Below the pieces are notes generated by a model. That model saw only the letters and a program-made list of their open reading frames with translations. It searched no databases and was not told the DNA's origin. DNA of 64,000 nucleotides from the NCBI GenBank assembly GCA_038087875.1, contig CM075981.1, positions 1,488,001 through 1,552,000 on the forward strand. The letters run 5' to 3'. Within the stretch, counting starts at the first letter, position 1. Every line of letters starts with the position of its first letter. The position numbers were made by a program, and so were the translations under genes. Below are positions 1-62,777 of this stretch, one piece after another. Source of the stretch: Malacoraja senta (taxonomy: Eukaryota).

Positions 1-294
1 ATCTGTCAGCAGCAAATGCCTCACGTCTTGGAGGCTCAGTGTCAGTGTCCTGTGAGTCTCTCCGTGGATCCCTTCCCATCCATTACACGTGGTTTGAGAA
101 GAAGGAGCATCGGGTGTCAACGATCTTGAAAGGCAATCAACTGGATCTGAGTTGTGACATCCTCAGAGGTGAACACCTTCGATATTACTGCACAGCCGCA
201 AATAATCGTGGGACAAAACCCAGTGAAATAGTCAAGGTGAAAGTCTTCAAAGGAGCAGGAACGTGCAGTTATGTGACAGAAATGAACAATGCAG
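1..294 (+). CDS. Gene 1 C2-type Ig exon (C2A), 5' end outside window
   Basis: Encodes VSVSCES..IHYTWF..DLSC..YYCTAANNRG. Donor GCAG|GTGAGT at 294/295, phase 1. Confidence 0.9.
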
Positions 295-3200
295 GTGAGT
301 GTTCCTCTCGTGTCCCTGAACCTGCTGCTATTCACCTTGTGGTGATGTTCATGGATTTCTTGTTATTTGCAGACGGCATCATTGCAGCCACCGTGAGCTC
401 ATGCTGTAAAATGCGAGAGTTTGTTTGGGGGACTGGCAAATAATTGCCCGTAGCTTCCACCATGGAGGTGTTGCGCAATTTCAGCAAAGGAGAGAAAGAC
501 ATGCACTTGTCACAAAGGGTTGAGTGCACTCCATCAAATTTCTGCCTTCTGCCTTAAAAAATGCCGCTTGGCTGCCGCTTAAGGTCTCACAGTCACTTTG
601 AGACATTGAAAGCAACCAAATGCATCCTGTTTGGATCCGCCATCATTTACAATCAAGGATGTGAGACCAAGCGGAGGCTTGGCGATCGTTTCGCCGAACA
701 CCTCCGGTCGGTCCGCAATAACCAACCTGAACTCCCGGTGGCTCAGCACTTCAACTCCCCCTCCCATTCCGTATCTGACCTCTCTGCCCTGGGTCTCCTC
801 CATGGCCACAGCGAGCAACGCCGTAAATTGGAGGAAATGCACCTCATATTCCGCTTGGGCAGTCTACATCCTGGTGGCCTGAACGTTGAATTCTCCCAAT
901 TCTGCTAGCCCTGGCTGTCCCCTCCCCTTCATCAGCCATCTGGTTGTCTCCTCCCCTCCCCCAGCCCTCGGGCTCCTCCTCCGCCTTTTCCTTTTTTCCT
1001 TTCTTCTCCCCACCCCCTTTCAGTCTGAAGAAGGGTTTCGGCCCGAAACGTTACCTATTTCCTTCGCTCCATAGATGCTGCTGCACCCGCTGAGTTTCTC
1101 CAGCATTTTTGTGTACCTATGTACAATTTCATGATCATGTTCATGATTTTAACTGTTAATTTGTGTTAAACTCCAGTAATATCACTAAATTAAATTGTAA
1201 TCTACTTGGCCGTCACTCCATCAAGTATAACCCTTACTTTTGTCAAAGAGAATTTTGAAATGAACTCCCAGTAGTCGTGGAGACGTTCAGATTGGAAGTC
1301 CAGATTAGAGTGTGAATGGTTTACATCAGAGAGACCAAGCTTATACAATGCCAGCGTTTCTTAAACTATTTCAGTGCCATTCACCCTTGAGTCTTTATTA
1401 CAAGATTTAATTCACCCTCCACTAAATATTCTTATGTTTTTTGGGTTATTATCATCTTATTTTCACGTGTGCATAATTTTATATATAATTTATTTTGTCA
1501 CATGAGCAAAAAACATGAATTAACTCATTCACCCCAAAATAATTTCATTCGCCCTTGGGTAAACCATTCATCAGTTTAAGAAGCACTGGCCGAGGCTACA
1601 ATTTCGCCGAACACTTGTGTTTGGTCTGTCATGACCCAGAGTCGTACTTGATAGACACCCCGTTGATGCAGAGCAGCAGCAGTTTGCACCATCTGCACGA
1701 TGCACTGCAGCAACTCACCAAGACTCCCAAGACATTACCTTCCAATTGCAACAGGCTCCGTGTTCAATGCATCATTAGTCACCATTCACACCCACATTGG
1801 CTGGGAAGCGCTTTGGAACGATGTGCAGATGGTGAGGGACGGTGTACAGTATCTGTCTCTCATCGCAATCTAGGTGGAATTCAACAGAGTTAAGAAAATC
1901 ATTGGGCGGACTCCCCTGTATATATTGATGTATACTATAATGTATATGTTTGTGAAAGACTAATTTTGCTCTTCAATCTATGAAAGAATTTCCTTCAGTT
2001 TCAGGTGCACTGTGGGCAGAGAGCGAAGTACGAGGGGTTGTGGGAAGAGCGATCTCAATCGATTGTCACTATGCAGCAGTGTACCGCTCACACACAAAAT
2101 GCTGGTGCCCTGGGACAAGTCGCCAATGTACACATATAGTGGAAACAAATGGGAAACATGGACAGAGCGGAAGAGTGTCAATCACAGATAACCCGGCACG
2201 AGGAATATTTACTGTGACTGTGGAGGATCTTCACTCTGGAGTTACAGGATGGTACAGATGTGGAATTATTACACCTGGCGAACCAACATTTAAAGTACAT
2301 CTCCAAGTATCTGAAGGTAGGTTTCTCAGTGAGTGACTTCATGTCTCGACTTTGGCATCTGCATAAAACATTTGTTGGGTCACATATGGGAGCCTGGTGC
2401 ACAGTTCTGGTCGCCGCTTTATAAAACAAAAGATGTGAAAGGTTTGGAGAGGTTACAGAAAAATGTCACCGGGATATTTAGTTGTAGTTTACAAATGCAA
2501 CATGGAAACGGATCCTTCGGCCCACCGAGTCCACACCGACTAGCGATCACCGGTCACACTAGTTCTATGTTATTCCACTTTCCCATTCGCTCCCTACACA
2601 CAATTCTACAATACCGCCATTCACACACCTCATTAGTGCAACATTATCACTATCAACAATTGTATACAAGGAAATTTAAAAGTTGTTGATAATGATACTG
2701 TTGCACTAATGAAGTGTTTGAATGTTGGTATTGTAGAATTGTGGCAGAGTTTCAGATTAAAAGAAGATTAACTGCAGATGCTGGAAATATAAAACAAAGA
2801 CAGATGGTGCTGCTGTGTATTGGTGCAGTGGCAGACATGGTAGTTCTGCCAGCTGGGTGGATGGAGAGACACAGAGATGTTCAAATCTGTTAAATTGTGA
2901 GGAGAAGGTACAGGGAAGACTTACAAGGATGTTGCGAGGGATTGAGCAGATTAGGACTTTATTTCTTGGAGCACAAGAGGATGAGGGATGATCTTATGGC
3001 AGGTAAAAAATAATGCGAGGAATAGATCGAGTTAATACACAGCCTTTTGCTCAGAGTAGGGGAATCGAGAACCGGAGGACATGGTTTTAATATGAGGGGG
3101 GAATGATTTAACAGGAACCTGGGGAGTAACGTTTTTACACAATGGTTGGTAGGCACATGAAACGAACTGCCGACAGAAGTAGTTATGGCAGGTACTATCG

Positions 3201-6200
3201 TAACATTTAATAAAATATTGGACATGTACATGAATATGATATGTTTAGTGGGTTAAGGGCCAAGAAAGGGCAGGTGGAACTAGTGTAGATTGGGCGTGTT
3301 GGTCAGCGAGGGCAAGTTAGACCGAAGGGCCGGTTTCTATGCTGTATGACTCTATGATTCTATGTAGATGGATGGGTCAGATTCCAAAATGGCGGCTCTG
3401 GCTAAGATACATGGTGGATATTGGCGAGTGTTTGATTTTCAGATGTTCACTCAGTTGTCTGACTGTTTGCTCCTTTCCCACAGACCCCGTGTCTGTTCCT
3501 GTGCTTGGCTTTCTGTCACCAGCCAATGTCTCCTGTCTCGGGGGCTCAGTGACAGTGTCCTGTGAGTCGGTCAGTGGATCCCTTCCCATTAGCTACACAT
3601 GGTATGAAAAGATCCCATCTGTGGATTCAAAGATCTCAGACCAAAATGCCCTGGATCTGCATTGTCAATCATTCAAACACCAGCACCATCAATATTATTG
3701 CACAGCCTCCAATAATAATGGAACAAAATCCAGTGAAATGGTCAATGTGTCCATCTCCAGCAGTGACGTGCCCTGCAGTTTTCTAGTGAAAATCAACGGC
3801 ACTGGTAAGTAGTGGGGGGAATGAGGAGAAGAAGGGGAAGTGCGGGTGGGGGTTTCATCAGATTACAAGTGATAGAAGCAGAAATAGACCATTCAATCAT
3901 GGCTGATCTATCTTCCCCATTCTCCTGCTTTCTCCTCATAACGTCCGTCACCCTGAAATCCCTGCACGTTATTTAATTAATTTATCAAGATTAATATATG
4001 GAATTATGGCTCATTTGTCAGTACTTGGTTGTTGGGCTCCAGAAATAGAATTCCTAGTGCTGGTGTAGGCTAACATCCTGTATAGAATTGTCTCTTCCAT
4101 TTACACAGCTTTAAACTAGGTTTGCAGTGACATCAGTCCATGCACATTCACTTTCCCACCACATGATCCACACACAGATATGGTAAGGGATCAGACATTA
4201 TCAGTAAATGTGGCCACAGTTAAATCCTTGACGACGGTATCCCATTTACCAGCACCTCGTCCATTGCAGCAATTCAGGTACCTCCACCTTCTGGGTTTAA
4301 AAATATGTCTTGATACCCTTGAAACATCCTGCTCCTTAACTTAACCATGTGTTCTCCACATTTACACATATCTGTCGTGCAACATTTCCCAAAAATCCAC
4401 TGTCTATGCAGCTCAGAGTTTTTGCACACCTGTAATTGGTTTCCCCTTCCTCACCTGGGGGAGGCGGACAGGAGCACTTGGAGAAAACCCACACGGTCAC
4501 AGGGAGGTGGTAAAAATTCCGTACATCCGTAGTCAGGATCGAACCCGGGTCTCTGGCGTTGTAAGGCAGCAACTCTACCGCTGCGCTACTGTGCCGTCGA
4601 CACCTGGCGCCAGAGTTGTTACCAGCCCGCCTGCTTGTCGTAACATCTCCCATTTACTCAACTCACACTGAAGAAACATTATCCTGTCTGTTAAGCCTAT
4701 CAACTACTTACATCGGAAAACCATACTCCTTTGTTCAACTGCAAGTGAAAAGCAGTGAAACTGACTTTTATTTCCTTGTTCCAACAGGTCATGAATATTC
4801 TTGTGAAAATTCGATAACATCCAATTACTCTGCAAGGTAAACCACTTTATTTCCAATGGAAGTTACAATATAGTAATTGCTGGTGTTTTGGTTGGGAATG
4901 CTTTATTTGGGAGAAATTTGTGCCTGCCTTTCACTGGCATTAAATGCCCTGAGAGTATTGATCTGAATGCACAGTGGCACAGCCGATAGAATCACAGCCT
5001 CACAACACCACGACCCTGGTTCATTAGGTGCTGTCTGTGCGTGGTCTGCATGTTTTGCCTTTTATTGTGTTGGTTTCATTTAAGTGCTCCAGTTTCCTCC
5101 CAGCTCCCAAAGATGTGCCAGTTGTAAATTGCCCCGTGTGTACAGGACAGCGGTTGAATCTGTGGATAGGGGATGGGGCGGGGAGGGAGGGAGGGTGTTG
5201 GACGGTAGTGCTAGTTGATGAGGAAGTGGGGAAAATAAAAATGGGATTGACAGAGGATCCGTGTGAATGTAGTTGACTGTCGGCACAGACCAGAAGGGCC
5301 AAATGGCCTGTTTCAATACTGTGTTTCTCCATGGGTCTTTGATCCAATGAAACCAAATATCGAAGCATAATCAAATTTTGTACGTCCAGCCATGATCACA
5401 TTGAATGGCGGTGCTGGCTCAAAGGGCCGAATGGCCTACCCCTGCACCTCTTGTCTATTGTCTATTGTCTATTGTTTCAAGCCTGACACCAAATATAAAT
5501 GTATCTCTTAAATATTCGTTAATAATATGTATATAACTTGCAAACCAATTATTAGTTAACTCTTCAGAAGGGGAATTACACTGGGTTTACATCTCATTGT
5601 GTTGTGTACATGCTTGGATGATAAGAACAAGTTCTTCCATTTGCTGCTTTTCAGAGAGCGCTTCCTGCAGTATTCACCATGACTTCTCCTTCACTAACCT
5701 CATCCCATGCTGTGAGATGAATATAGTTGCCAAACCCAAGTCTTGCAGTTTAGCTTGGTTGACACTTGCTCTGGTGTGGTGCTGATAGGTAAATGCATTA
5801 TGAATTATGGGCTAAGACACCCCCCCTTGATATCACTTATGGCAACACCTTGCCATTGATGGGGTCACGCACCAACAATTCGCTGGCGCAGAATGTGAGA
5901 AAAGTCTTGAATCAGACCGAATACAGCGAACTGAGTTAACTCAATCAATCAATCAATCAATCAACCGTTATTGTCATTTTAAACATTTCACACATAAATA
6001 AAAACAATAAAAACACTCCAAAATAATAATAATCAATAAATAAATATATAAATAAAACAATCCAGTCCCTGATAAAAACAATACGAATAGCTAAAAAGTG
6101 CAGGTAAAAAAACAGCAACATTAAAATACAAGTAAAAACATTCATAAATAACTGACGCTCCCTTACACATTGAACCTTGAAAACATTGTTTTTTTAAATT

Positions 6201-7906
6201 ATCCCTGAATATTCCATCATAATACAGTCATGAAAGTGGGAACACTTTGTTATTTATCTTGTTACAATTGAAATAGGTCTGGCTTTCTATCACACTCTTG
6301 CGATAGGAAATAAGAATATTAATAAAACGCACGCCGCTATTAGCGAACCTTTAACCGATTTTTCGAACACACACCATCCACACACCTACCGCGTTAATCC
6401 AAGTAATATCGAGGGGGCGAGATTAAGCATTAACATTTTTAATTTATTTTATTACTTGGCCTCATCCGTTTCCATATTTATTGTCCCACCTCCCTTCCAC
6501 CATTAGAATTGATCCCTTTTAATTAATCTATCCATATGGATTTTATTATAATCTTCCTTGCAGCTGCATTTTCTTTCTTCCAGGGTATTACACTGTTCTT
6601 TGTATCTTTCACACATCCACAGTGTTCCCTTTCCCGTGACTCCCAGTCTGAAGAAGGGTCTCGACCCGAAACGTCACACATGGGGTCATGCAGCAAAGAT
6701 TCGGTGGCGCAGAAAGTGAGAAACCAGCCTTGAATTCAACCGAATACACCGAACTGTCTTAACTGACGCTCCCTTACACATTGAACCTTGAAACCTCTCC
6801 CGCTGTGTTTCGCCAGCATTGCGTGTCTATCTACTCTGTAGTCACTGAATTCACTGCTCCATCTGCTGACTTATTTCTCTGTCTTCTCCGAATCCATTTA
6901 ACCGTCTAATCTCTGATACCCAGTATTGTAGATATGCTCCAGCAAAGAGGTCAGTAATTGGTGATCATAGGTTGTCCCCCCCCCCCCCCAGTCCAACACC
7001 CGTTCTTTCTCCAAGATGATCTCCATTGGCTCTGCTGCTTCGCCCCGCTCCACTTCACTAAGATTATGAAGCAAATAACAGGTAAATGTTTCAAAGATAA
7101 ATCGTCACGTTTCCTCCCATTGATTCTGTATCTCTTGCCCTTTGCCCAGTTACATCTCATGGAATGTGGGGCGCTGGTTGTTCTTTCTCCTGCTTGTGCT
7201 CTGGAGTATCTCAACCGCGGTGTTCACAAGAGGCTGTAAGGTAGGTTTTATTATCATCATGTTCATAAATTATAGGAGCAGAATTGGTCCATTCAGCCCA
7301 TTATATATAATCCGCCCCCAATCACGACTATTCTAGCCTTCGCTCCCGATCCATCCTCCTGCCTTCACCCTATAACCCTTGACATCCTTATTTATGAGGA
7401 ATATGAAAATCTCCGGCTTAAAAATATCAATTGATTTGGATAGGTACAAAACTACTGGAGTAACTCAGCGGGACAGGCAGTATCTCCGGAGTGGATTGAT
7501 ATGGCCTCCACAGCCTCCTATGGTAATGAAATCCATTGATTCACCACCCTCTGCCCAAAACAATCCATTCTCTTCGCCGAATGTATCCAAACGGTTTCCA
7601 TTAATGCTTTCAAATATCCTGTCCATTGATATAAACAAAAGTCGTGCACGTTTTCATAACCTGAAGTTAAACCAAATCACTATGTAGATGATATCATGTG
7701 GTTTTGTCAGGTTGTACGTGTGCTGGGTGGATTTCTGTGCGTGGTGTGGATTCGTTGGGGTCCATCTTCCAGACAGCCATGTGTTGGGGGTGGTCGGGTC
7801 AAATAAAGCGTGGTTCCCACTGTCAGTGAGTCTGATGACTTCACATTGTCTTTTGCAGAGACGCGATGAATCAGAACCTCGCCACTCGACACACGAATTA
7901 GAATGA
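1..7906 (+). CDS. Gene 1 (5'-partial): MDIR/CD300-pIgR-like receptor, activating-type; join(<1..294,1999..2316,3484..3804,4788..4836,7150..7240,7859..7906)
   Basis: Exons are bounded by AG/GT with compatible phases (1,1,1,2,0). They encode C2, V, C2, stalk, an Arg-containing TM and a short tail, and are near-identical to the 3' half of gene 2. Confidence 0.85.
663..1118 (+). mobile_element. 5'-truncated Penelope-like element (GIY-YIG C-terminus plus 3' end) with ATGT target duplication
   Basis: Encodes ETKRRLGDRFAEHLRSV..FNSPSHS..LIFRLGSLHPGGLNVEFS. ATGT at 659-662 and 1119-1122. Empty site in gene 3 near 46508. Confidence 0.85.
1021..1056 (+). ncRNA. Minimal hammerhead-ribozyme-like motif at the 3' end of a Penelope-like element
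   Basis: CTGAAGA-AGGG(tttcgg)CCC-GAAAC-GTT: conserved core, 3-bp stem II, loopless palindromic stem III. Copy at 23594-23629. Confidence 0.5.
1999..2316 (+). CDS. Gene 1 V-type CD300/pIgR-like Ig exon (V4); alternative in-frame acceptor at 2005
   Basis: Encodes ISIDCHY..TKCWCPGTSRQC..GRVSITDNPARGIFTVTVEDL..GWYRCG. Acceptor ttcag|tttcag|gt, donor GAAG|GTAGGT, phase 1-1. Confidence 0.92.
3484..3804 (+). CDS. Gene 1 C2-type Ig exon (C2B)
   Basis: Acceptor cccacag|AC, donor ACTG|GTAAGT. Encodes PVL..GGSVTVSCES..ISYTWY..YYCTASN. 321 nt, phase 1-1. Confidence 0.92.
4390..4596 (-). mobile_element. tRNA-derived SINE (reverse strand)
   Basis: Reverse complement shows A-box ..AGCGGTAGAG and B-box GGTTCGATCC. 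Copies at 26963-27169 and ~50060-50322. Boundaries approximate. Confidence 0.7.
4788..4836 (+). CDS. Gene 1 stalk exon (GHEYSCENSITSNYSA)
   Basis: Polypyrimidine tract then ccaacag|GT, donor AAG|GTAAAC. 49 nt, phase 1-2, matching the phase-2 TM exon. A homologous exon is present in all three genes. Confidence 0.8.
6184..6590 (-). mobile_element. Degenerate L1-clade LINE 3' fragment
   Basis: Minus strand reads AARKIIIKSIWID.., resembling the C-terminus of fish L1 ORF2. Assignment is tentative. Confidence 0.35.
6644..6678 (+). ncRNA. Minimal hammerhead-ribozyme-like motif
   Basis: cagtCTGAAGAAGGGTCTCGACCCGAAACGTCac. Copy at 29217-29251. Degenerate versions near 9403, 11718, 19365, 21515, 41860 and 44795 (+) and near 50880 and 61878 (-). 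Confidence 0.5.
7150..7240 (+). CDS. Gene 1 transmembrane exon with Arg (SYISWNVGRWLFFLLLVLWSISTAVFTRGCK)
   Basis: Acceptor tttgcccag|T (phase 2), donor AAG|GTAGGT (phase 0). Hydrophobic run preceded by Arg. Confidence 0.82.
7859..7906 (+). CDS. Gene 1 terminal cytoplasmic exon (RRDESEPRHSTHELE*)
   Basis: Acceptor attgtcttttgcag|AGA, phase 0, TGA at 7904-7906. No tyrosine motif. Confidence 0.7.
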   Translation, partial: RRDESEPRHSTHELE

Positions 7907-8289
7907 AGACTCCTAGCTTGCACCAACAGTGAGGGAATTCTGCACCGCGATGAAATATTTATGCATCATCCTGCTTTGTCAACTGATACCAATTGGACGA
8001 ATATATGTATCTTGCAATTCAACGAACGGTTTCATGAAAGTGACTTCAAAGCAATGTTCCAAACTTTCCAAACCATATCTGTTTCCAAAACTCATTTACC
8101 GCACTGGTCTTAATGTTTGTCACCTCTTCCAAGGTTTCTTTCATCACCTTCGAACTATTGTTTTAACCTCTGCGTGGTTTCTGCTGCTCAAAAGTCTTAT
8201 ACCCTGTTAAAATATATTATATGCATTCAACTTCCTGGAAAAAAATGTTTTCGCTGTCAAATGAATAATTATGCATCAGGATGCTTCTT

Positions 8290-12270: not shown

Positions 12271-12307
12271 ATGTGGATTCCCATTCTTCTCATCTCCTCG
12301 CTGCCGG
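12271..12307 (+). CDS. Gene 2 leader exon (MWIPILLISSLP)
   Basis: aaaacaATG context, hydrophobic signal peptide, donor CCGG|GTGAGT, phase 1. Continues as VSGAVW in the V1 exon. Confidence 0.88.
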
Positions 12308-15300
12308 GTGAGTGAAAGCCAGATCCTGATATTCCAATGATCAATGTTATTTGGCGTCCCATGCACCCTTTTCACAGCAGAGATAGTTAAGTATGTGTAG
12401 ACATGTAACGGGGGAGGTGCAACTCAGTGCATTGTGGTGATGGATCTGAAATCACATTTGAATATCTAGACTATGTTCGTAGTTTAATCACTGTTGACAC
12501 TTGGTCTAATAGCATCCTGATGATAGTTTATAGGCATAAAATAGCAAATGAATTTGGAGCAGATACTCCAAGATACCTGGACCGGACATAGGTTGCAGCA
12601 TCACCAGGAAGTTAATTCTACACTTTTGAAATGTGTTTACAACTTAGGGGGGAGTCGGGATTGTGGACTCATTGTGTCAGTTCAAATATTCCCTGCATTT
12701 GTCCAACTCAACTCTGTCGCAAACCCAACAATCCCCCGGAGTCTGAGACTGAACCACTGTCCTCGCCCTATCCACCTACCCCCAACTCTCTCTCCATCCT
12801 CTTTCCAATCCGCAACCAAGTCGCGCTGAAATGCAAGTTCAGTTTATTGTCACGTGTACCGAGGTACAGTGAAAAGCTTTTTCTTGCGTGCTAACCAGCC
12901 AGATACATGATTATAATCGATCCTCTTACAGTGCATAGATACATGAAAGGGAAATAAAGTTTAGTGTAAGGTAAAGCCAGCGAAGTCCGATCAAGGGTAG
13001 TCCGAGGGTCTCCAAAGAGGTAGATAGTTCAGCACTGCTCTCTGGTTGTGGTAGGATGATTCCGATGTCTGAGTACAACTGCGAAGGAACTGTCCCCGAA
13101 TCTGGCGGTGTGCGTTTTCACGCTAATAACGCTCTCCGATAATGTACCCGCTTTATTGTAGTTCGTCCGTCCTCTGTGTCCTCAGTCAGGGCTTTGTAAA
13201 GGCAGTGAATGTCTAAACACGGGTCCGCCTTTCCGCGGCCGGGTGGGACTACAGGGGTACCAGGCGCTGTTCGCGGGCACCTGGGGGATTTCCGGGACAT
13301 CTGGGCACCGCCTGGGGTTGAATACATCCTTGACAAGTATTGTAACATAGTTGTATAGTTGTTTATTTCGTTTATTTGTTTCTCTTGTATTATGGTGGTG
13401 GGTTCTTTTTTGTTTTATTGTATCGTAAGTATTATTTTCAATAATTAAATTAATTATTTGATAATATTTTTAAAAAAACACGGGTCCGGCCCAGTGTCGG
13501 TTGAGAGATGAATGTTGGCAGCGCAGCCGGCGGCACCGCCAATTAAATAGCAAAGTGGGTGCTATTTAATTAAATAGCCTGTGATTGTTGGAAGGCAGCT
13601 CCTGCAACACTGCCGCGCTCCCTCAGAACCGCACTGCGATCCCAGCCCAGTTTCTGCTCAGGGATCTGGAGTGGGAAGTGAACCCAAATTGTACTGACCC
13701 GCGGACAGAACATTGACACAACTGGTACAATAACAGCACTGTCTGCACTTCAGACCGGAGACATTGGTCGTGAAGCAATATGACACATTATGGAACGTTT
13801 TACGTTTTCTTTCATGTAATCTTCAAAATGTATCAATTCTGGGTAAATATTTTTAGTATAATATCTAAAGTGACCAGCACACAAGTGGACCCGGATCCAA
13901 AATTTATAATACTCGGAACATCAGAATTAAATCAAACATTTACAACAACACAAAGAAACTTTATTGATTATAGTATAATAACAGGAAAAAATTTAATTCT
14001 AAAATTTTGGAAAGGCCCTACGGCCCCCACAATCAAAATGTGGATTATAGAAATGACGGTGACCTTAAACGTGGAAAGAATCAGATTTTCCCTGTTGGAC
14101 AAACAGGAATTATTCGTTGGAACATGGTCTCCCTTTATTGATTATTTAAAGGGTCAGAATGGTTCAGCACGGGAACCTGACTAATGCTCGGGCTAAAGAA
14201 TGGATGAAATGTTATACTCTGAAATGTACGAATATATCTCGAATTAAGTTTTTTATTTTAATAATTTTTTCCATTCTTCTTTAACTATCTTTCTCTTTTT
14301 TTTTTGTTTTTTGTTTTGTTTTTTGTTTTTTTTGTTTGTTTTTTTCTCTTTTTCTTCTCTCTCTTTTCTTTCTTTACTTCATCTATCTTTTTAGTTCTAT
14401 CTAGTTAAAAAAAAAAAAAAAAAAGACAAAAGGTATTGGAGACAATGTAATAATAATGGATAATATTATCAATTCAAAAATGTAAGCCTGTAATGATGTT
14501 AATAGGTTATGTACTTATCTCCAATAAAAAATATTTTCCAAAAAAAACAAAATGTATCAATTACCATTAAACAGTTAATTTGCTCTCCATCTGAAAGTTT
14601 CTCCGCTCAGTTTCAGGTGCAGTGTGGGCAAAGTGGGAAGTAAAAGGAGTTGTGGGAAGAGAGATCACAATCGATTGTCACTATGCAGCAGAGTACCGCT
14701 CACACACAAAATACTGGTGCCGTGGGAGGAGTCGATCGTGTAGAGTTTTAGTGGAAACAAATGGGCAACACGGACGGAGTGGAAGAGTGTCAATCACAGA
14801 TAACCCGGCTCGAGGAATATTTACTGTGACTGTGGAGGATCTTCACTCTGAAGATACAGGATGGTACAGCTGTGGAATTTCAACATCAGCCGACCATCCA
14901 ATATTTAACGTTTTACTCGAAGTATCTGACGGTATGTTTCGCAGCGAATGACTTGACGTCTCCAGCAGAAAGACAATACAGGATTACAATCGATCCTCTT
15001 ACAGTGCATAGATACATGAAAAGGAAATTACGTTTAGTGTAAGGCGAATCCAGCAAAGTCCGATCAAGGGTAGTCCGAGGGTCATCAAAGAGATAGATAG
15101 TTCCGCACTACTCTCTGGATGTGGTAGGATGATTCAGATGCCTGACAACAGCTGTGAAGAAATTGTCCCCGAATCTGGCGGTGTGCGTGTTCACGCTAGT
15201 AACGCTCTCCGGTAAGGGACCTGGAGGTGGGTGGTGAGTGGGCGAGTGGTGAGTGGGTGAGTGGTTGGGTGAGTGGGCAGATGCATGGCAGATGAAGTTT

Positions 15301-34826: not shown

Positions 34827-34863
34827 ATGTGGATTCCCATTCTTCTCATCTCCTCGCTGCCGG
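34827..34863 (+). CDS. Gene 3 leader exon (MWIPILLISSLP)
   Basis: Identical to the gene 2 leader. Donor G|GTGAGT. Confidence 0.88.
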
Positions 34864-46800: not shown

Positions 46801-49800
46801 TCACCCTCCACCAAATATTCTTATGTTTTTTTTGGTTATTATCATCTTATTTTCACTTCTGCATAATTTTATATATAATTTATTTTGTCACATGAGCAAA
46901 ACACATGAATTAACTCATTCACCCCAAAATAATTTCATTCACCCTTGGGTAAACCATTCATCAGTTTAAGAAGCACTGGCCGAGGCTACAATTTCGCCGA
47001 ACACTTGTGTTTGTTCTGTCATGACCCAGAGTCGTACTTGATAGACACCCGGTTGATGCAGAGCAGCAGCAGTTTGCACCATCTGCACGATGCACTGCAG
47101 CAACTCACCAAGATTCCCAAGACATTACCTTCCAATTGCAACAGGCTTCGTGTTCAATGCATCATTATTCACCATTCACACCCACATTGGCTGGGAAGCG
47201 CTTTGGAACGACCTGTGCAGATGGTGAGGGACGGTGTACAGTATCTGTCTCTCATCGCAATCTAGGTGGAATTCAACAGTGTTAAGAAAATCATTGGGCG
47301 GACGCCCCTGTATACATTGATGTATACTATAATGTATATGTTTGTGAAAGGCTAATTTTGCTCTTCAATCTATGAAAGAATTTTCCTTCAGTTTCAGGTG
47401 CACTGTGGGCAGAGAGCGAAGTACGAGCGGTTGTGGGAAGAGCGATCTCAATCGATTGTCACTATGCAGCAGTGTACCGCTCACACACAAAATACTGGTG
47501 CCCTGGGACAAGTCGCCAGTGTACACATATAGTGGAAACAAATGGGAAACAAGGACAGAGCGGAAGAGTGTCAATCACAGATAACCCGGCACGAGGAATA
47601 TTTACTGTGACTGTGGAGGATCTTCACTCTGGAGATACAGGATGGTACAGATGTGGAATTATTACACCTGGCGAACCAACATTTAAAGTACATCTCCAAG
47701 TATCTGAAGGTAGGTTTCTCAGTGAGTGACTTCATGTCTCGACTTTGGCATCTGCATAAAACATTTGTTGGGTCACATATGGGAGTCTGGTGCACAGTTC
47801 TGGTCCCCGCTTTATAAAACAAAAGATGTGAAAGGTTTGGAGAGGTTACAGAAAAATGTCACCGGGATATTTAGTTGGAGGTTACAAATGCAACATGGAA
47901 ACGGATCCTTCGGCCCACCGAGTCCACACCGACTAGCGATCACCGGTCGCACTAGTTCTATGTTATTCCACTTTCCCATTCGCTCCCTACACATAATTCT
48001 ACAATACCGCCATTCTCACACCTCATTAGTGCAACATTATCACTATCAACAAGTTTATACAAGGAAATTTAAGAGTTGTTGATATTGACACTGTTGCACT
48101 AATGAAGTGTTTGAATGTTGGTATTGTAGAATTGTGGCAGAGTTTCAGATTAAAAGAAGATTAACTGCAGATGCTGGAAATATAAAACAAAGACAGATGG
48201 TGCTGCTGTGTATTGGTACAGTGGCAGACATGGTAGTTCTGCCAGCTGGGTGGATGGAGAGACACAGAGATGTTCAAATCTGATAAATTGTGAGGAGAAG
48301 GAGCAGAGAAGACTTACAAGGATGTTGTGATGACTTGAGGGCCTGACATACAGGGAGGGATTGAGCAGATTAGGACTTTATTTCTTGGAGCGCAGGAGGA
48401 TGAGGGATGATCTCATGGCAGGTAAAAAATCATGCGAGGAATAGATCGAGTTAATACACAGAGTCTTTTGCTCAGAGTAGGGGAATCGAGAACCGGAGGA
48501 CATGGTTTTAATATGAGGGGGGAATGATTTAACAGGAACCTGGGGAGTAACGTATTTTACACAAAGGTTGGTAGGCACATGAAACGAACTGCAGACAGAA
48601 GAAGTTATGGCAGGTACTATCGTAACATTTAATAAAATATTGGACAGGTACACGAATATGATATGTTTAGTGGGTTAAGGGCCAAGAAAGGGCAGGTGGA
48701 ACTCGTGTAGATTGGGCGTGTTGGTCAGCGCAGGCAAGTGAGACCGAAGGGCCTGTTTCTATGCTGTATGGCTATGATTCTATGTAGATGGATGGGTCAG
48801 ATTCCAACCTGGCGGCTCTGGCTAAGATACAGAGATGGTGGATATTGGCGAGTGGTTGATTTTCAGATGTTCACCCAGTGTCTGACAGTTTGCTCCTTAC
48901 CCACAGAACTCGTGTCTGTTCCTGTGCTTGGATTCCTGTCACCAGTCAACGACTCCTGTCTCGGGGGCTCAGTGACAGTGTCCTGTGAGGCGGTCAGTGG
49001 ATCACCGCCCATTAGCTACAGCTGGTATGAAAAGACCCTACCTGTGGATTCAAAGATCTCAGACCAAAATGCCTTGGATCTACATTGTCAATCCTTCAAA
49101 CACCAGCACCATCAATATTACTGCACAGCCTCCAATATTAATGGAACAAAATCCAGTGAAATGGTCAACGTGTCCATCTCCAGCAGTGACGTGCCCTGTA
49201 GTTTTCTAGTGAAAATCAACGGCACTGGTAAGTAGTGGAGGGAATGAGGAGAAGAAGGGGAAGTGGGGTGGGGCGGTTTATATGATCACAAGTGATAGAA
49301 GCAGAAATAGACCATTCAATCATGGCTGATCTATCTTCACCTCTTCATCCCATTCTCCTGTCTTCTCCACATAATCCCCGACACCCTGAAATCCATGCAC
49401 GTTATTTAATGAACATCAATATTAAAATGATAGAATTATGGCCCATTTGTCAATACTTGGTTGCTGGGCTCCAGGAATAGATTCCCCAGTGCTGGTGTAG
49501 GGCAGATTCCTGGCTAGAACCTCCTCTTATGTTTACACAGTTTTAAACTAGGTTTGCAGTTACATCATTCCAAGCACTTTCACTTTCCTGCCATAATCTC
49601 CGCATGACCGACACTCAAAAATGGGAAGGGAACAGAAATTATCCGTAAATATGGCCGCAGTTAACTCCTAGACTATATCAGCTTTGGTCCACTGTGTTAA
49701 TGTTGACCATTCAGCACCATCGATACTAATCCCATTTACCATCCCCTCACCCACAGTCTTCTCAGACTTGACAATTCATGTGTCTTCACCATCTAGGTTT

Positions 49801-52800
49801 AAAAATATTCCTTGCTCAGATACCCTCCAAATATTCTACTCCTTAACCCAACCCTATGTTCTCCACTTCTACACACATCTGCTGTGCTGATTTCCCACAA
49901 AGTACCCTATCTATGTTCCTCATAGCTTTACACACCTGTAATAGGTTCCCCCTTCTTTTCCTGTGTGGATTAATATATCCGACTATCCAGCCTCTCCTTC
50001 GAACTGTAATGTTTCATCCCAGGCACTACCCCTCGCATGAAATCACCTCCTTTATTTTAATTTAGAAATCCAGCGTGGAAGCAGCTGTCTTTAACCTGTG
50101 CACTAATTCTATCCTACTCACTAGGGACAATTTACAGAAGGCAATTAACCTAAAAACCTGCACGTCTTTAGAATATGGGAGAAAACCGCAGCACTTGAAT
50201 AAAACCCACGCGGTCACATGGAGAACATAAACACTCCGTGCAGACAGTACCCGTAGTCAGGATTGAACTCGGGTCTCCTGCGCTGTAAGGCAGCAACTCA
50301 ACTGGTGGGCCACTGTGCCGCCCTAATGTAGGCAACCTGAGTTGGAACCAGCACTACAGCTTATCACGATAACATCTCCCATTTGCTGCAAATTACACTG
50401 AAGAAACATTGCCCTGTCAATTAAACCTATAAACTCCTTATATCGGACAAACATGCTCGCTTGTTCAACTGCAAGTGAAAAGCAGTGAAACTGATTTTTA
50501 TTTCCTTGTTCCAACAGGACTTGAATATTCTTGTGAAACTTCGAAAAGAACCAATTATTCTTCAAGGTAAACTACTCTGTTTCCATGTACTAATTGCTGG
50601 TGTTTTGATTGGGATTGCTTCAATTTGCAGAACGTTGTGTCTTCCGTTTACTGGCATTAAAGGCCCTTGGGAGTATTGATCTGAATGCACAGTGACACTG
50701 CCAGTGGAACCACAGCCTCACAATGCCAAGAACCTGAACTTAGGCGCCGTCTATGTGTGTTCTGCAAATTTCGCCTTTCATTGTGTTGGAAGGAACTGCA
50801 GATGCTGGATTAAACTGAATATAGGCACAAAAAACTGAGTATATCGGCGGGTCTGACAGCACCTTTGGAGAAAAGGCATAGGTGACGTTTCGGGTTGAGT
50901 CCCTTCTTCAGAGTGAGAGGCAGGGGAAAGGGAAACGAGAGCGATATCGACGGTGATATAGAAAGGTATAAAACATTGAATGAAAGATATGCGACAAAAG
51001 TAACTATGATGAATGAAACGATCCATTGTTAGCTGTGCGCTCGGTGAAAACGAGTTGTACGGACAATGAGACACTACAAGACAGTCAAATTCGTACAATG
51101 ACTAGGGTGGGGGAGGGACGGGGAGAGAGGGGATGCAAGGGTTATTTGAAGTTATAGAAATCAATATTAATATCGCTTGGCTGTAAGATGCCCAAGCGAA
51201 ATATATGGCACTGTTCCTCCAATTTCCATTTGGCCTCACTCTGGCAATGGAGAAAGCACAGAATAGAACGGTCAGTGTGGGAATGGGAGGGGGAGTTAAA
51301 GTGTTTAGCAACTGGAAGATCATATAGTCCCAGGCGGATTGAGCGTATGTGTTCAATGAAACGATTGTCCAGTCAACGTTTGGTCTTGCTGATGTATAAG
51401 AGTCCACGCCTGATACAATAGATGAGGTTCGAGGCGGTTCAAATGAACTCTGCCGAACCTCAAATGACTGTTGAGTTCCTTGGACAGAGTCGAGGGGGGA
51501 GTTATAGGGACAGATGTTGCATTTCCTGCAGTTGAACGGGAAGGAATCTGGGGAGAGGTTTGTTTGGATGGGAAAGGATGAGATAACCAGGGAGGTATAG
51601 GTCATAAGGTCATAAGGGATAGGAGTAGAATTGGGCATTCAACAGGATTGCACAGGGAACGGATTCCTGCACTCCACCTGGCACTCAAATGCACTTGGAC
51701 CATCTCCAAAACCTCCCTCCGCTTTCTCGATCACACAATCTCCATCACAGGAGATAGACTATCGATGGATGTCTATTATAAACTGACTGACTCCCACAAC
51801 TATCTAGATCGCACTTCTTCTCACATGATTTGTGTAAATGTGGTTGATGGTCAGCGCAGACCTGAAGGGCCAAATGGCCTATTTCCATACTGCGTCTCTC
51901 TATGGATCCTATGAGCCCAAATATCAGGAAACATAAGCAATGCTTTTGCATGTGTTTCAAGACTGACACTGAAAGATAAATTTATCTCTTAAACATTCTT
52001 CTAAACAAGAATTTAGAAGAATGAGGGGGGACCTCATTGAGACATACATAACAGTGAAAGGCTTGGATAGAGTGAATGTGGAGAGGGTGTTTCCACCAGT
52101 GGGAGAGTCTAGGATTAGAGGAAGTAGCCTCAGAATTAGATGCTCTTTTTAGGAAGGAGATGAGAAATGTCTTCAGTTAAAGGGTGGTGAATCTGTGGAA
52201 TAATTTGCCACAGAATGATGTGGAGGCCAAGTCAGTGGATACATTTAAGGCAGAGATAGATAGATTCTTCTTTAGTACGGGTGTTGGAGGTTATGAGGAA
52301 AAGGCAGGAAATGGGGTTAGGTGGGAGAGAAAAATCAGTCATGATTGTATGGCGGAGTAGACTTGATGGGCCGATTGGCCTAATTCTGCTCCTATTCCTT
52401 ATGACCTTATGACCGAATTCTATAATAATATACGTATATAATTTGCAAACCAGATATTAGCTAATTAATCAGAAGGGAAATTGCTTACATCTCATTGTGT
52501 TGTGTATATGCTTGGGTTATAAGAACAGGATCCTCCATTTGTTGCCATTCATATGCACTACGGGCTGAAAAGATGAAGTACGAGGGGAAGCTGGCCAGGA
52601 ATATAAATAAGGATAGTAAAAGCTTCTTTAGAAAATGTTAAGGGAAAAAGAGTAGCAAAATTTGATGTGGGTCCCTTGAAACCAGACATGGGTGAAATTA
52701 TTATGGGGAACAAGGAAATGACAGAGGAGTTGAACAGGTACTATGGATCTGGCGTCACTAAGGAAGACACAAACAATCTCCCAGAAGTACTGGAGGACAG

Positions 52801-55800: not shown

Positions 55801-58800
55801 TCGCCGCTGCGGAAGCCCCGAAAAGCGGTCTCCCACCAGGGGACCCGCGGGCTTCCGGTGTTGCCGTCCGCCAGACCCGCGGTTGTAGCCTCCGAATCTC
55901 CGGGGGTCGGGTAGCAGCAGCGATTGTCTCCACCACAGCTCCACCCGCTCCGGACTCGGCCAGCCCCGCGACGGTGAGTAGTCCGCAGCTCCGCAACTGG
56001 AGCCCCAGGTCGTTCCTGCTGGAGGCCGCTCCACGTTGCCCAGCCCCAACGACAACGGAGACCCGACAAAGAAAAGGTCGGGTCTCCCGTGCAGGGGAAA
56101 GATTTTAAAGTCCCCCCCACCCCCACCCCCACCCTCCCACACACATACCCCGACAAAAAAAAAAAAAAAAAAACTACATAAAAACGAGACAAAAATAATA
56201 AAGAGACAGACGGACTGCAGAGGCCGCTGCAAACGAGTCGCGCCGCCCACCGTTGGATGATAAACTAAACTAAACTAAACCAAACTCAGCTGAACTAAAC
56301 TAAAGTAATCATTGCTATTAATGTGTAACAGTTCCCATGCATTGTTTGTGAAGGAGGAGGGAGGGTTCCTTAATGTTTGGGCGCAATTGCTCTTGAACCA
56401 GTTTCATGATCGTTGGTCAATGTCACCTTACTGTGAGCAGATTAGCTGCTGCGTTACTCACCGAAACAGACTCTACACCTCATCTCCTTTGCTGCATACT
56501 TCAAAAAAATCATGAAAGGTGCCATATAAATTGTTGACTTTTGTTCTTTACTGAAGGCCAAGAATCAATGATGAGCCATATCTCACCCTTCCCTATTCTC
56601 TGTCCGACAGGATCACTTACATAGTTGCGTCTGGTGTCGCTGTGCTTCTCCTGATTCTCATCATTGCCTTCTTTTGGTACCAAAAGCGTAAAACCAAGGG
56701 TGAGTTTCTGATTTCCCTTAAATAATTTCACAATACTTGTCTCAGTTCCCTCCAGAATGTCAAGAGATTTAATTCTGATCTAATCAACAAATGCCCTGCA
56801 TTAAAGTAATACAGTGTTGGAGGAAGCATGGATGATCAATAATGCTATCACGTTTGATGCTATAATGGTGACTCGGTGACAAAAACTATTCTTTTAACAT
56901 CATTGTACTTAAACTGTCTGAGTGTGAAATGGCAGAGATGCGTGAGAACTAAGAGGCTAGGTAGAAGTAAGATTTACATCGATACTCTCATCCTCTCAGC
57001 TGTTAGAATATGCTTCGTGTGATTAGCTGTTGTATTTCAAATCAGATTAAGTCTATTGTCACATGCACAAGCATGATGAAGTAGTTACAATGAAGATCAC
57101 ACCTGCAGCCTCACAGGGACATAAACAACGTACAACATACCTGCATCACACAGAGGGCGGTGGGTATATGACAGGAGCTGCCAGAGGAGGTAGTTGAGGC
57201 AGGGCAGGTCTAGCCTGGACAGGTAATCCAAGATGTGAACACCCATGAACTTGAAGCTGCCAACTATCTCCACCGCCGATGAAAATGTGAAAGTTCACTG
57301 AGCTGTTCCTCAGTCAGAGAGCATTAGTGGAAAGTAAAACAGTAAACATTTCACATCCAAGACCCATTACAACAGGGAAAGAGGGAAAAGAGGGGGGAAC
57401 CTCATTGAAAGATCAAATAGTGAAAGGCCTAGATACAGTAGATGTAGAATGGATGTAGAAGGGACTCAAATAGAGAATGCTATTAGACAGTGTGTGAGGC
57501 AGAAGGCAGAGAAGGAAAGCACTCAGACCCAACATGTAGGGGGGAAAGAAGAAAACAATAATAAAAAGAGAACAAGAGGTGGTGGGGTTCTTAAATGGGT
57601 GAGCAGAGAAACAGAGGGGTGTCAAATGCGGGCGGAAGCAATAGGTAGCAAGGTGAAAAGTAAAAGTGGCAGGCAGACAAATCCAGGGCAAAAATCAAAA
57701 AGAGCCACTTTTCAACATAATTGTATAAGGGGTAAGAGCGTTGTAAAAACAAGCCTGAAGACTTTGTGTCTCAATGCAAGGAGCATTCGTAATAAGGTGG
57801 ATGAGTTGAACATGCAGATAGCAATTAATGATTATGATATAGTTGGGATCACGGAGACATGACTCCAGGGTGACCAAGGCTGGGAGCTGAACATCCAGGG
57901 ATATTCCATATTCAGGAGGGATAGAGAGAAAGGAAAAGGAGGTGGGGTAGTGTTGCTGGTTAGAGAGGAGATTAACGCAGTGGAAAGGAAGGACATTAGC
58001 TTGGAGGATGTGGAATCGGTATGGGTAGAGCTGCGAAACACTAAGGGGCAGAAAACGCTGGTGGGTGTTGTGTACAGGCCACCTAGCAGTAGTAGTGAAG
58101 TTGGGGATGGCATCAAACAGGAAATTAGAAATGCGTGCAACAAAGGCAAAACAGTTATAATGGGGGACTTCAATCTACATATAGATTGGGTGAATCAAAT
58201 TGGCAGGGGTGCTGAGGAAGAGGATTTCTTGGAATGTATGAGGGATAGTTATCTAAACCAACATGTAGAGGAACCAACGAGAGAGCAGGCTATTCTAGAC
58301 TGGGTATTGAGTAATGAGGAAGGGTTAGTTAGCAGACTTGTTGTGCGTGCCCCCTTGGGCAAGAGTGACCATAATATGGTTGAGTTCTTCATTAGGATGG
58401 AGGGTGACATTGTTAATTCAGAAACAACGGTTCTGAACTTAAAGAAAGGTAACTTTGAGGGTATGAGACGTGAATTGGCCAAGATTGACTGGCAATTAGT
58501 TCTAAAAGGGTTGACGGTGGATATGCAATGGAAGGCATTTAAAGACCGCATGGATGAACTACAAAAATTGTTCATCCCAGTTTGGCAAAAGAATAAATCA
58601 GGGAAGGTAGTGCATCCGTGGATAACAAGGGAAATCAGGGATAGTATCAAAGCAAAAGATGATGCGTACAAATTAGCCAGAAAAAGCAGCATACCAGAGG
58701 ACTGGGAGAAATTCAGAGACCAGCAGAGGAGGACAAAGGGCTTAATTAGGAAAGGGAAAATAGATTATGAAAGGAAACTGGCAGGGAACATAAAAACTGA

Positions 58801-61800: not shown

Positions 61801-62777
61801 CAGCAAGTAAGATTGTCATTGTTCTATCTGGGACATATGACAATAAAACATTCTATACTCTTGAAAAGGAACAGTTGACGTTTCAAGGCGAGACCCTTCT
61901 TCAGACTGAGAGTCAGGTGAAAGGGAAACAAGAGATATAGAAGGTACATGGAACAAATGAATGAAATATATGAATGAATGATGTTTAAACCTGTTCATAA
62001 TATGGCTCTATCGACAACATATTTTCCAGAATCCAAGTGCAATACATCACACGGTGAAGACAACAATGAAATCCAGGTAAAAATGTGAAATATAAATTCT
62101 CTGAGTGATGAAAAATATATAATATTGAATTATCTGTGTTTACACAGGCCATTTAGCAACACCAGTCCACTCCAGTTAAGAGAACCAGCACAGAAACAGG
62201 CCCTTTGGCCCACCGAGTCCACGCCGACCGGTGACCCACGCACACAAAAACTATCCTACGCACACTAGGGACAATTTGCAATTATGCCAAACCAATTAAC
62301 CTACAAACATGTTGTAGGCACTGTCAGGCAACAACTCTACCGCTGCTCCACCATGCTGCGCTATCTTTGTGTTGTAAACAGCAGCAATGGCCTGTTCTGT
62401 ACACTGAACAGTTTGAGACCTACTTTGTAATAGACATCTGTTGAGGACCTTTCAAATCTATTAGGTTGTAAAATTGGATTTTGTTATATTTTAGGAAATG
62501 GCAGTGTTGGAAAGGAACCACGTTGATGCAAATCTGCAGCAAATTGGAAACAATAAACAACAGGGCAGCTGACCATTTGGATAACAATGAAGGTGGAATC
62601 ACGTATGCAGTGGTGAAATGTCAAAGGAAGTCGAGATCAAGGCACCCTGAGACTCACAACACTGTTCTCTACGCAGATGTTAATTTTCATCGCAACTGCC
62701 CAAAGGGCAATCGGAAACCCACTCCTACTAGGGCTCCAGAGAACTCTGAAACAATTTATGCCTCTGTTGTTTCTTAG
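34827..62777 (+). CDS. Gene 3: MDIR/CD300-pIgR-like receptor L-V-V-V-C2-V-C2-stalk-TM-ITIM tail, inhibitory-type, with an apparent 1-nt frameshift in the last exon
   Basis: join(34827..34863,37176..37496,38727..39041,43099..43413,45824..46144,47392..47709,48907..49227,50518..50566,56611..56699,62030..62076,62495..62777). As written it stops at 62570-62572 (about 736 aa). Removing one base restores about 804 aa ending in TIYASVVS*. Confidence 0.8.
36403..37112 (+). mobile_element. Orthologous L1 3' fragment in gene 3 intron 1
   Basis: Target duplication at 36388-36402 and 37113-37127. ORF 36344-36748. Confidence 0.8.
37176..37496 (+). CDS. Gene 3 V1 exon (alternative acceptor 37182)
   Basis: Encodes KYWCRGSSRPC..DTGWYSC. 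Splice sites as in gene 2. Confidence 0.92.
38727..39041 (+). CDS. Gene 3 V2 exon
   Basis: tttcag|CT...GACG|GTACGT. Confidence 0.92.
39240..40675 (-). mobile_element. CR1 LINE 3' fragment, longer ortholog in gene 3
   Basis: ORFs 39200-40300 and 40310-40618 (SQHGFMKGKSCLTNLL, YLDFQKAFDK, FADDTKL). Confidence 0.9.
40850..41952 (+). mobile_element. Penelope-like fragment downstream of V2 (gene 3); shortened ortholog at 18960-19457 in gene 2
   Basis: Zn-knuckle/GIY-YIG-like remnants followed by a hammerhead-like 3' end. Boundaries approximate. Confidence 0.7.
43099..43413 (+). CDS. Gene 3 V3 exon
   Basis: ctttcag|CT...GACG|GTACGA. Confidence 0.92.
43790..44885 (+). mobile_element. Penelope-like fragment downstream of V3 (gene 3); ortholog at 20865-21605 in gene 2
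   Basis: Encodes NCRRCNTSHYISP, RQRFTCISSNLIYSIRCSRC. Paralogous to 40850-41952. Confidence 0.75.
45824..46144 (+). CDS. Gene 3 C2A exon
   Basis: cccacag|AA...GCAG|GTGAGT. Confidence 0.92.
47392..47709 (+). CDS. Gene 3 V4 exon (alternative acceptor 47398)
   Basis: Canonical TKYWC and DTGWYRC. Donor GAAG|GTAGGT. Confidence 0.92.
48907..49227 (+). CDS. Gene 3 C2B exon
   Basis: cccacag|AA...ACTG|GTAAGT. Confidence 0.92.
50518..50566 (+). CDS. Gene 3 stalk exon (GLEYSCETSKRTNYSS)
   Basis: ccaacag|GA...AAG|GTAAAC. 49 nt, phase 1-2. Confidence 0.82.
50785..51830. mobile_element. Penelope-like fragments: minus-strand GIY-YIG region (50785-51640) and plus-strand RT-thumb piece (51645-51830)
   Basis: Minus strand: NCRKCNICPYNSPLDSVQG. 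Plus strand: WTISKTSLRFLDHTISITGDRLSMDVYYKLTDSHNYL. Confidence 0.7.
52560..54470 (+). mobile_element. CR1 LINE ORF2 3' fragment (frameshifted)
   Basis: ORFs 52667-53323, 53377-53841 and 53843-54094 (KSPGPDG, NYRPVSLT, PQGSVLGP, FADDTKL). (tttctatg)n tail at ~54435-54470. Flanks rejoin as the gene 1 intron at ~5650. Confidence 0.92.
55080..55370 (+). mobile_element. tRNA-derived SINE
   Basis: Degenerate A and B boxes (gttcgatcc). Body like 9674-9997. Confidence 0.65.
55385..56240. repeat. Unclassified CpG-rich interspersed repeat with homopolymer runs
   Basis: GC/CpG-rich block flanked by poly-C (55561-55580) and A runs (~56155-56173). Overlapping ORFs have no recognisable protein. Confidence 0.4.
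56611..56699 (+). CDS. Gene 3 transmembrane exon (RITYIVASGVAVLLLILIIAFFWYQKRKTK)
   Basis: Pyrimidine tract then gacag|G (phase 2). Uncharged 21-aa helix followed by a basic stop-transfer segment. Donor AAGG|GTGAGT, phase 1. Confidence 0.9.
57457..60660 (+). mobile_element. Near-full-length CR1 LINE ORF2 (APE plus RT), one premature stop, nested in an older CR1 fragment
   Basis: KTLCLNARSIRNK..IVGITET*LQGD then the same frame to 60562 (870-aa ORF: GDFN, SDHN, FADDTKL). (tttctatg)n tail at 60635-60660. Older CR1 flanks at ~57395-57456 and 60661-60970. Confidence 0.95.
61010..61390 (-). mobile_element. Penelope-like 3' fragment, reverse strand
   Basis: Reverse complement of ..aacattgacttctctaacttcaag.. 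and a degenerate hammerhead end. Confidence 0.65.
62030..62076 (+). CDS. Gene 3 cytoplasmic exon 1 (ESKCNTSHGEDNNEIQ)
   Basis: attttccag|AA...CAG|GTAAAA, phase 1-0. Confidence 0.7.
62495..62777 (+). CDS. Gene 3 terminal exon: ITIMs ITYAVV (62598-62615) and VLYADV (62664-62681), ITSM TIYASV (62751-62768)
   Basis: Acceptor ttgttatattttag|GAA. The phase-0 frame reads EMAVLERNHVDANLQQIGNNKQQGS*. The tyrosine motifs are in the adjacent frame, ending at TAG 62775-62777. Confidence 0.8.

Follow-up and report, generated by a model that had tools for sequence, protein, structure and literature searches.

Skate MDIRs (modular domain immune-type receptors) are the closest described relatives of the genes analysed here. 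Their original description is reportedly that of Cannon et al. in Immunogenetics in 2006, and cDNAs of both the activating and the inhibitory form are said to have been on record since that year. The two cDNA-derived proteins that we retrieved, both from the clearnose skate Rostroraja eglanteria, have five Ig domains in the case of MDIR3 (P0157; V-V-C2-V-C2) and four in the case of MDIR5 (P0174; V-C2-V-C2). We know of no ligand, adaptor or phosphatase for MDIRs. Here we characterise a 64,000-nt stretch of the Malacoraja senta genome (GCA_038087875.1, contig CM075981.1, positions 1,488,001-1,552,000 of the forward strand), hereafter the window, which carries three genes of this type, all on the + strand; positions are given in window numbering. 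We read the window as part of a tandem skate MDIR cluster with two MDIR5-type genes (genes 1 and 2) and one MDIR3-type gene (gene 3), marked by a recent duplication and by a frameshifted inhibitory tail, and put the probability of this reading at roughly 0.8.

The order of ectodomain modules, V-V-V-C2-V-C2, had been proposed in an earlier note made from the letters of this DNA and was reproduced by profile and structure matches. Pfam recognised V-set in exons 1, 2, 3 and 5 and Ig_C17orf99, Ig_3 or Ig_2 in exons 4 and 6. Among PDB structures the V domain matched pIgR (E=1e-60), CD300 (CMRF35-like), NKp44 and TREM2, and the C2 domain matched FCRL5. The V domains contain the extra cysteine pair (pattern CHY...KYWC-x6-C...DTGWYxC), but its two cysteines are separated by six residues and not by seven as the earlier note had it. 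When the C4 exon was used in an exhaustive HMMER search, relatives with several Ig domains came up, and with the closest inhibitory relative as query a word-indexed search gave NCBI models of Rhinoraja longicauda, Leucoraja erinacea and Amblyraja radiata together with "Modular domain immune-type receptor 3" and "5" of R. eglanteria. The exons of the window are 80-92% identical to exons of four skate species, none of them being identical.

Further features connect the window genes to the MDIRs. They mix V and C2 domains, whose number varies in the family (relatives have V-V-C2-V-C2, V-C2-V-C2 or V-C2-V-C2-V-C2); they are 73-78% identical to MDIR3 and MDIR5 over ~500-630 aa, with collinear C-terminal modules; and a type with a charged transmembrane (TM) segment, genes 1 and 2, stands beside a gene with TM and tail exons of the MDIR3 type, gene 3, whose tail frame is broken. 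Judged by sequence, the three genes are members of the known skate MDIR family with V domains of the pIgR/CD300/TREM type, as had been recognised before. MDIR5 is 77.9% identical to gene 2 over 497 aa, and its stalk, Arg-containing TM and 15-aa end are collinear with those of genes 1 and 2 and nearly identical to them, whereas genes 1 and 2 add two N-terminal V domains and have the TM motif NVGR in place of KVGR. MDIR3 is 75.2% identical to gene 3 over 626 aa and is alike in the stalk, the uncharged TM, the small cytoplasmic exon and the sequence of a tail with two immunoreceptor tyrosine-based inhibitory motifs and one switch motif (ITIM/ITIM/ITSM). However, the five-domain MDIR3 has its tail in frame, whereas in gene 3 the Ig domains number six and a 7-base frameshift precedes the motifs. 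The pIgR and CD300 proteins proper share the V-domain type, including the extra cysteine pair, but pIgR has V-type domains only, followed by a long sorting tail, and CD300 has a single V domain on a stalk, whereas the window genes have six Ig domains with FCRL5-like C2 domains at positions 4 and 6 and a short or ITIM-type tail. Interleaved FCRL-like C2 domains occur in neither pIgR nor CD300, and the window genes belong to neither group.

The spliced coding sequence of gene 2 (2136 nt, 711 aa) is free of internal stops and encodes V-V-V-C2-V-C2, a stalk, a TM segment with Arg in the motif NVGR and a short, motif-free tail (Table 1). Every Ig exon is open, has phase 1 and lies between AG and GT. 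The start of the window cuts gene 1, of which the exons from C4 to the tail are visible; these are one base off gene 2 in total, and the 3' halves of the two genes are 99.85% identical. Both genes have the Arg-TM and 15-aa tail exons described previously. When we searched for the stalk as a short exon with an acceptor in phase 1 and a donor in phase 2, conserved in genes 2 and 3, a single candidate per gene was found. That this exon is joined to the TM exon of the type starting at 29706 agrees with the MDIR5 cDNA, whose C-terminus is collinear across stalk, TM and tail. With their collinear C-termini, the proteins derived from the MDIR3 and MDIR5 cDNAs are the best support at hand for the stalk-to-TM junctions.

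Junctions were also sought among contigs of sequencing runs, namely RNA-type contigs from a related organism (X3 and X4) and DNA-type contigs (X5). One contig in X3 and one in X4 join 29794/29796 to 30413/30415, with the cut ambiguous by the letters AG; both diverge from the genome at the TM acceptor and have 119 more letters upstream. Another RNA-like contig of a related organism matches up to 26376, one base short of the predicted C6 donor. The X5 contigs continue unbroken through the TM, tail and C6 splice sites. The TM-to-tail splice of the activating type is seen in the RNA of a relative and is the sole junction so seen; the C6-stalk and stalk-TM junctions were not recovered among the contigs of the related organism, the 49-nt exon probably being too short to align. 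As a side observation, two acceptors stand in tandem at the V1 and V5 exons, 6 nt from each other (TTCAG|TTTCAG|, at 14605-14616, 24566-24577 and 47386-47397), and the second of them, if used, would remove Val-Ser from the start of the domain.

Regarding gene 3, the uncharged TM segment noted earlier was found (Table 1), and the 47-nt cytoplasmic exon and the last exon were located by comparison with relatives. The splice sites are canonical and the product has 736 aa up to a premature stop. The ITIM/ITIM/ITSM tail previously attributed to this gene holds for the DNA but not for the spliced frame. The motifs ITYAVV, VLYADV and TIYASV are encoded within 62562-62777, one frame off that of the upstream exons: from phase 1 at the end of the TM exon, the 47-nt exon leads to phase 0, in which the last exon yields EMAVLERNHVDANLQQIGNNKQQGS and then a stop. 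The spliced product ends ...GNNKQQGS* at 62570-62572, 5' of all three motifs, where the MDIR3 protein runs ...QQLGNNRAADHLDNNEGGITYAVV... uninterrupted. The tail is out of frame because of seven extra bases, AAACAAT (62548-62554), directly 5' of AAACAAC. Neither the internal acceptor at 62540 nor other downstream AGs rescue the frame of the ITIMs, each staying in or entering a stopped frame, and skipping of the 47-nt exon leads to a stopped frame as well. As assembled, gene 3 is predicted to encode a membrane-anchored receptor with a 49-aa, tyrosine-free tail, apparently a signalling-null form; nonsense-mediated decay is not expected because the stop lies in the last exon.

The tail of gene 3 is covered by unspliced DNA contigs of two runs, X1 and X2, which contain only 0.48-0.76 of the sampled words and possibly come from another population or a sister species. 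Contigs of both runs omit exactly seven letters at 62548 (depth 15.6/15.6 in X1 and 247.5/275.3 in X2), and the contig with the omission also has A>G at 62513. The seven bases are missing from both aligned paralogues of the thorny skate, Amblyraja radiata, and the tail is in frame in 10 of the 10 ITIM-tailed relatives examined, from four skate species. Such strict conservation, the two DNA read sets that lack the bases and the otherwise intact gene with canonical splice sites would fit a normal, functional inhibitory receptor of the MDIR3 type in which the seven bases are a consensus or assembly error. However, the insertion lies outside any homopolymer and forms an imperfect 7-nt repeat (AAACAAT beside AAACAAC), which is atypical for a consensus error, and the difference at 62513 is what another haplotype would show. 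We consider an error unlikely and lean slightly towards the reference animal truly carrying the insertion as an allele or haplotype; that the intact contigs derive from a paralogue or a sister taxon seems improbable.

Two further observations concern the long introns of gene 3. Small clusters of substitutions and indels distinguish the window from the X1 and X2 contigs at 57053-57145 and 61120-61168, and at each of 61120 and 61125 both runs have two variants at a ratio of ~1:2; these may be heterozygous sites or collapsed paralogues. The stalk-to-TM intron (6.2 kb) includes a GC-rich segment (~50% GC) at 55400-56250, ~360 bp 5' of the TM exon, with long overlapping open reading frames (ORFs) on both strands whose Pro/Arg-rich, low-complexity translations have no Pfam match.

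The ectodomains of genes 2 and 3 are identical at 609 of 643 residues (94.7%) and differ at 34. Their leaders are 100% identical at the nucleotide level, the Ig exons range within the ~93-99% reported earlier (Table 1), and the TM exons are unrelated. Around the stalk the intron identity drops from ~98% to 77-83%, and ~240 bp 3' of the stalk exon the homology stops, the identity falling stepwise toward the membrane (99%, 97%, 93%, 84%, then none). Remnants of TM or tail exons of the opposite type were sought behind the stalks of genes 2 and 3 and none were found. The earlier note had seen in this arrangement a complete paired-receptor module: the architecture and the similarity of the ectodomains bear this out, but the module is not complete as assembled, the inhibitory tail being frameshifted and gene 1 cut by the window.

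In a maximum-likelihood tree of V5+C6, activating and inhibitory forms pair within species, with support of 100/97 for the window pair, 93/90 for clearnose MDIR3 and MDIR5 and 99/98 for the Rhinoraja pair, and the activating/inhibitory label has to change as often on this tree as it possibly can. For the TM and tail modules, by contrast, orthology between species can be recognised by type. Ectodomains grouping by species together with tails grouping by type point to concerted evolution of paired-receptor ectodomains, through gene conversion or unequal crossing-over, and the process seems to have acted very recently in the window. Between 22574-26377 and 45851-49227, exons C4-C6 are 4.39% divergent and introns 2.74% (Fisher p=0.02), a comparison confounded by the identity gradient. 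The excess in exons C4, V5 and C6 may reflect diversifying selection on the C2 domains or the gradient alone; the nonsynonymous-to-synonymous counts between genes 2 and 3 are near the neutral expectation.

Self-comparison showed a head-to-tail repeat across the window with a period of ~22.57 kb. The match is 99.2% between 1-16044 and 22574-38610 and ~97% between 17001-23235 and 38609-46511, and a third, partial unit at 46508-49673 matches 1119-4232 and 23692-26805 at 93.4%. The first two units, A and B, have their boundary in the V3-C4 intron, so the 5' half of a gene (leader, V1, V2 and V3) and its 3' half (C4 to tail) come from successive units. Counted in 1-kb steps, 1-11000 and 22574-33556 differ by 18 substitutions (0.16%) and 17 gap columns. 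Divergence this low could mean that the assembler doubled a single locus into units A and B, and hence into genes 1 and 2, by placing two haplotypes in tandem, and that the animal has just one activating gene here. Yet the following 5 kb diverge by 1.6%, and the remainder by 2.5% with ~1.7 kb of indels; these include events of ~1 kb and differences in retrotransposon content. In addition, a third, older unit follows in register, the window is free of N runs or gaps, and tandem arrays are found in the thorny skate too, so we regard the doubled-haplotype explanation as improbable and keep to a duplicated activating gene.

Within the unit, the V2 segment and its flanks resemble the V3 segment and its flanks at 89.8% over 1 kb, which indicates that the third V domain arose by intragenic duplication. 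A stretch of ~957 bp 5' of V2 (16045-17000) is present in unit A and missing from unit B, and 16612-17633 resembles the stretch upstream of V3 (19684-20690) at 89.8%; the left flank of the V2/V3 duplication is lost in gene 3. The intron of gene 3 between the TM and cytoplasmic exons harbours a long interspersed nuclear element (LINE) in sense orientation (57400-60670, + strand), a non-LTR retrotransposon with an uninterrupted ORF of 870 aa (57950-60562, +) for an endonuclease and a reverse transcriptase (Pfam Exo_endo_phos_2 and RVT_1). Its enormous contig depth in all DNA runs suggests a very abundant, possibly active family. Fragments of the same family, on both strands, lie at 15253-16015, 17627-18887, 37792-38581, 39200-41290 and 52586-54454, in the V1-V2, V2-V3 and stalk-TM introns, and explain most of the length difference between the repeat units.

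The idea that the genomic layout may be undescribed did not hold. The MDIR-like cluster of the thorny skate (GCA_010909765.2, CM021389.1) is a same-strand tandem array that starts with an inhibitory tail, followed by a gene with inhibitory stalk, TM, middle exon and tail, a gene with activating stalk, TM and tail, and a further gene of inhibitory type. Inhibitory and activating genes alternate there with the same set of stalk, TM and tail exons as in the window, whereas the number of domains per gene differs, paralogues a and b have in-frame tails, and the protein identity to the window is 75-90%. The tandem alternating layout is already present in public data, though poorly annotated. One 75-kb thorny skate model (P0163; 10001-84969 of the cluster locus) fuses an activating ectodomain to the inhibitory tail of the next gene, and a model of a related skate (P0006) joins a TRIM E3 ligase to an activating MDIR gene. 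Such merged models look like prediction artefacts.

Taken at face value, the fusion in P0163, together with the common strand of all the genes, would suit a single transcription unit with alternative 3' ends, in which one ectodomain is joined to the Arg-TM exons in some transcripts and, by read-through, to the downstream inhibitory exons in others. Against this, every unit is equipped with a leader exon of its own, upstream of which the sequence is identical, and with poly(A) signals of its own, no opposite-type remnant lies behind either stalk, and the clearnose cDNAs are simple collinear products. We find this arrangement very improbable and treat the three as separate genes. For annotation, caution is advised, as the inhibitory copy is frameshifted in the assembly and automatic skate models merge neighbours under misleading names such as "pIgR-like" and "FCRL5".

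The exons and other features of the three genes are collected in Table 1.

Table 1. Coordinates of MDIR gene features in the window
Feature	Position	Strand	Evidence or remark
Gene 1 C2 exon 4 (cut by window start)	1..294	+	Identical to gene 2 22574-22867; donor CAG|GTGAGT
Gene 1 V exon 5	1999..2316	+	0 differences vs gene 2 exon
Gene 1 C2 exon 6	3484..3804	+	1 difference vs gene 2 exon
Gene 1 stalk exon, 49 nt	4788..4836	+	Identical to 27361-27409
Gene 1 TM exon, Arg in NVGR	7150..7240	+	100% identical to 29706-29796
Gene 1 last coding exon, 15 aa + stop	7859..7906	+	Identical to 30415-30462; AATAAA at 8290, 8307
Gene 2 leader exon MWIPILLISSLP	12271..12307	+	Regex match, GT donor; fits MDIR3 and MDIR5 N-termini
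Gene 2 V1 exon	14611..14931	+	Pfam V-set E=2e-14; best PDB matches pIgR, CD300; splice sites
Gene 2 V2 exon	17119..17433	+	Pfam V-set; splice sites
Gene 2 V3 exon	20175..20489	+	Pfam V-set
Gene 2 C2 exon 4	22547..22867	+	Pfam Ig_C17orf99/Ig_3/Ig_2; best PDB match FCRL5 E=4.5e-38
Gene 2 V5 exon	24572..24889	+	Pfam V-set; second acceptor 6 nt downstream at 24578
Gene 2 C2 exon 6	26057..26377	+	Pfam Ig_C17orf99/Ig_3/Ig_2
Gene 2 stalk exon HEYSCENSITSNYSA, 49 nt	27361..27409	+	Joined to C6 and TM in MDIR5 cDNA
Gene 2 TM exon, Arg in NVGR	29706..29796	+	Sequence; joined to 30413/30415 in X3 and X4 contigs
Gene 2 last coding exon RRDESEPRHSTHELE, stop	30415..30462	+	Sequence and contigs; AATAAA at 30846, 30863
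Gene 3 leader exon	34827..34863	+	Identical to gene 2 leader
Gene 3 V1 exon	37176..37496	+	98.8% nt identity to gene 2 V1
Gene 3 V2 exon	38727..39041	+	97.1% nt identity to gene 2 V2
Gene 3 V3 exon	43099..43413	+	98.4% nt identity to gene 2 V3
Gene 3 C2 exon 4	45824..46144	+	95.3% nt identity to gene 2 C4
Gene 3 V5 exon	47392..47709	+	98.4% nt identity to gene 2 V5
Gene 3 C2 exon 6	48907..49227	+	93.1% nt identity to gene 2 C6
Gene 3 stalk exon LEYSCETSKRTNYSS	50518..50566	+	83.7% to gene 2 stalk; fits MDIR3 stalk
Gene 3 uncharged TM exon, ends ...WYQKRKTK	56611..56699	+	Hydropathy scan, sequence; fits MDIR3 TM
Gene 3 cytoplasmic exon ESKCNTSHGEDNNEIQ, 47 nt	62030..62076	+	Fits MDIR3 and thorny skate
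Gene 3 last exon	62495..62777	+	Entry frame stops at 62570-62572; ITIM/ITIM/ITSM in next frame, stop 62775-62777
Gene 3 extra bases AAACAAT, frame-shifting	62548..62554	+	Absent from X1/X2 contigs, thorny skate paralogues and MDIR3 cDNA protein

In the tandem-cluster reading, the near-identity of the genes would result from a very recent tandem duplication or unequal crossing-over of the 22.6-kb unit, and with the boundary in the V3-C4 intron every such event would re-pair 5' and 3' gene halves. The Arg near the outer face of the TM segment in genes 1 and 2 may recruit an FcR-gamma-like adaptor with an immunoreceptor tyrosine-based activation motif, by analogy with NxxR receptors, as NxxR motifs pair with FcR-gamma in Xenopus and mammals (PMC2413239). 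The in-frame ITIM/ITIM/ITSM tails of the relatives would be expected to recruit SHP-type phosphatases, and the ectodomains of genes 2 and 3 could bind the same ligand.

Several points weigh against parts of this reading. The N of NxxR is variable in the relatives (K in MDIR5, T in Rhinoraja), so that Arg alone is the feature of the family. The junctions of gene 3 and the C6-stalk and stalk-TM junctions are based on cDNAs and gene models of other skates and not on reads. In X2, ~10% of the depth at 62548 is without the deletion, and X1 and X2, given their partial word content, are no proof of polymorphism.

The known picture of the MDIR family is unchanged by this locus, which provides a model, exact to the exon, of the two MDIR signalling types as neighbours in a skate genome. 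Modestly interesting are the offset 22.6-kb duplication, which appears to homogenise the ectodomains, and the loss of the inhibitory tail, which is possibly polymorphic. As the unit is offset from the gene borders, each unequal exchange would swap ectodomain halves between activating and inhibitory genes. Null alleles are frequent in mammalian paired-receptor families. A tentative extension, which we find somewhat doubtful, is that the window shows a real segregating null allele of a conserved inhibitory MDIR on a haplotype with a freshly duplicated activating gene, which together with the species-wise pairing of ectodomains in three skate lineages would suggest a KIR/LILR/SIRP-like arms race in a cartilaginous fish. 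If true, homogenisation by unequal crossing-over, gain of activator copies and loss-of-function alleles of inhibitors would all operate in cartilaginous fish.

The locus also supports the view that the dynamics of paired receptors are older than the split between cartilaginous and bony vertebrates. The KIR, LILR, SIRP and CD300 families and the FcR-like NxxR/ITIM pairs of Xenopus likewise combine near-identical ectodomains with two kinds of anchor, a charged TM followed by a short tail and an uncharged one followed by a tail with ITIMs, and in these mammalian and Xenopus receptors the ectodomains are homogenised within species, as here. Unlike all of them, however, the MDIRs mix V domains of the pIgR/CD300 type with C2 domains of the FCRL type.

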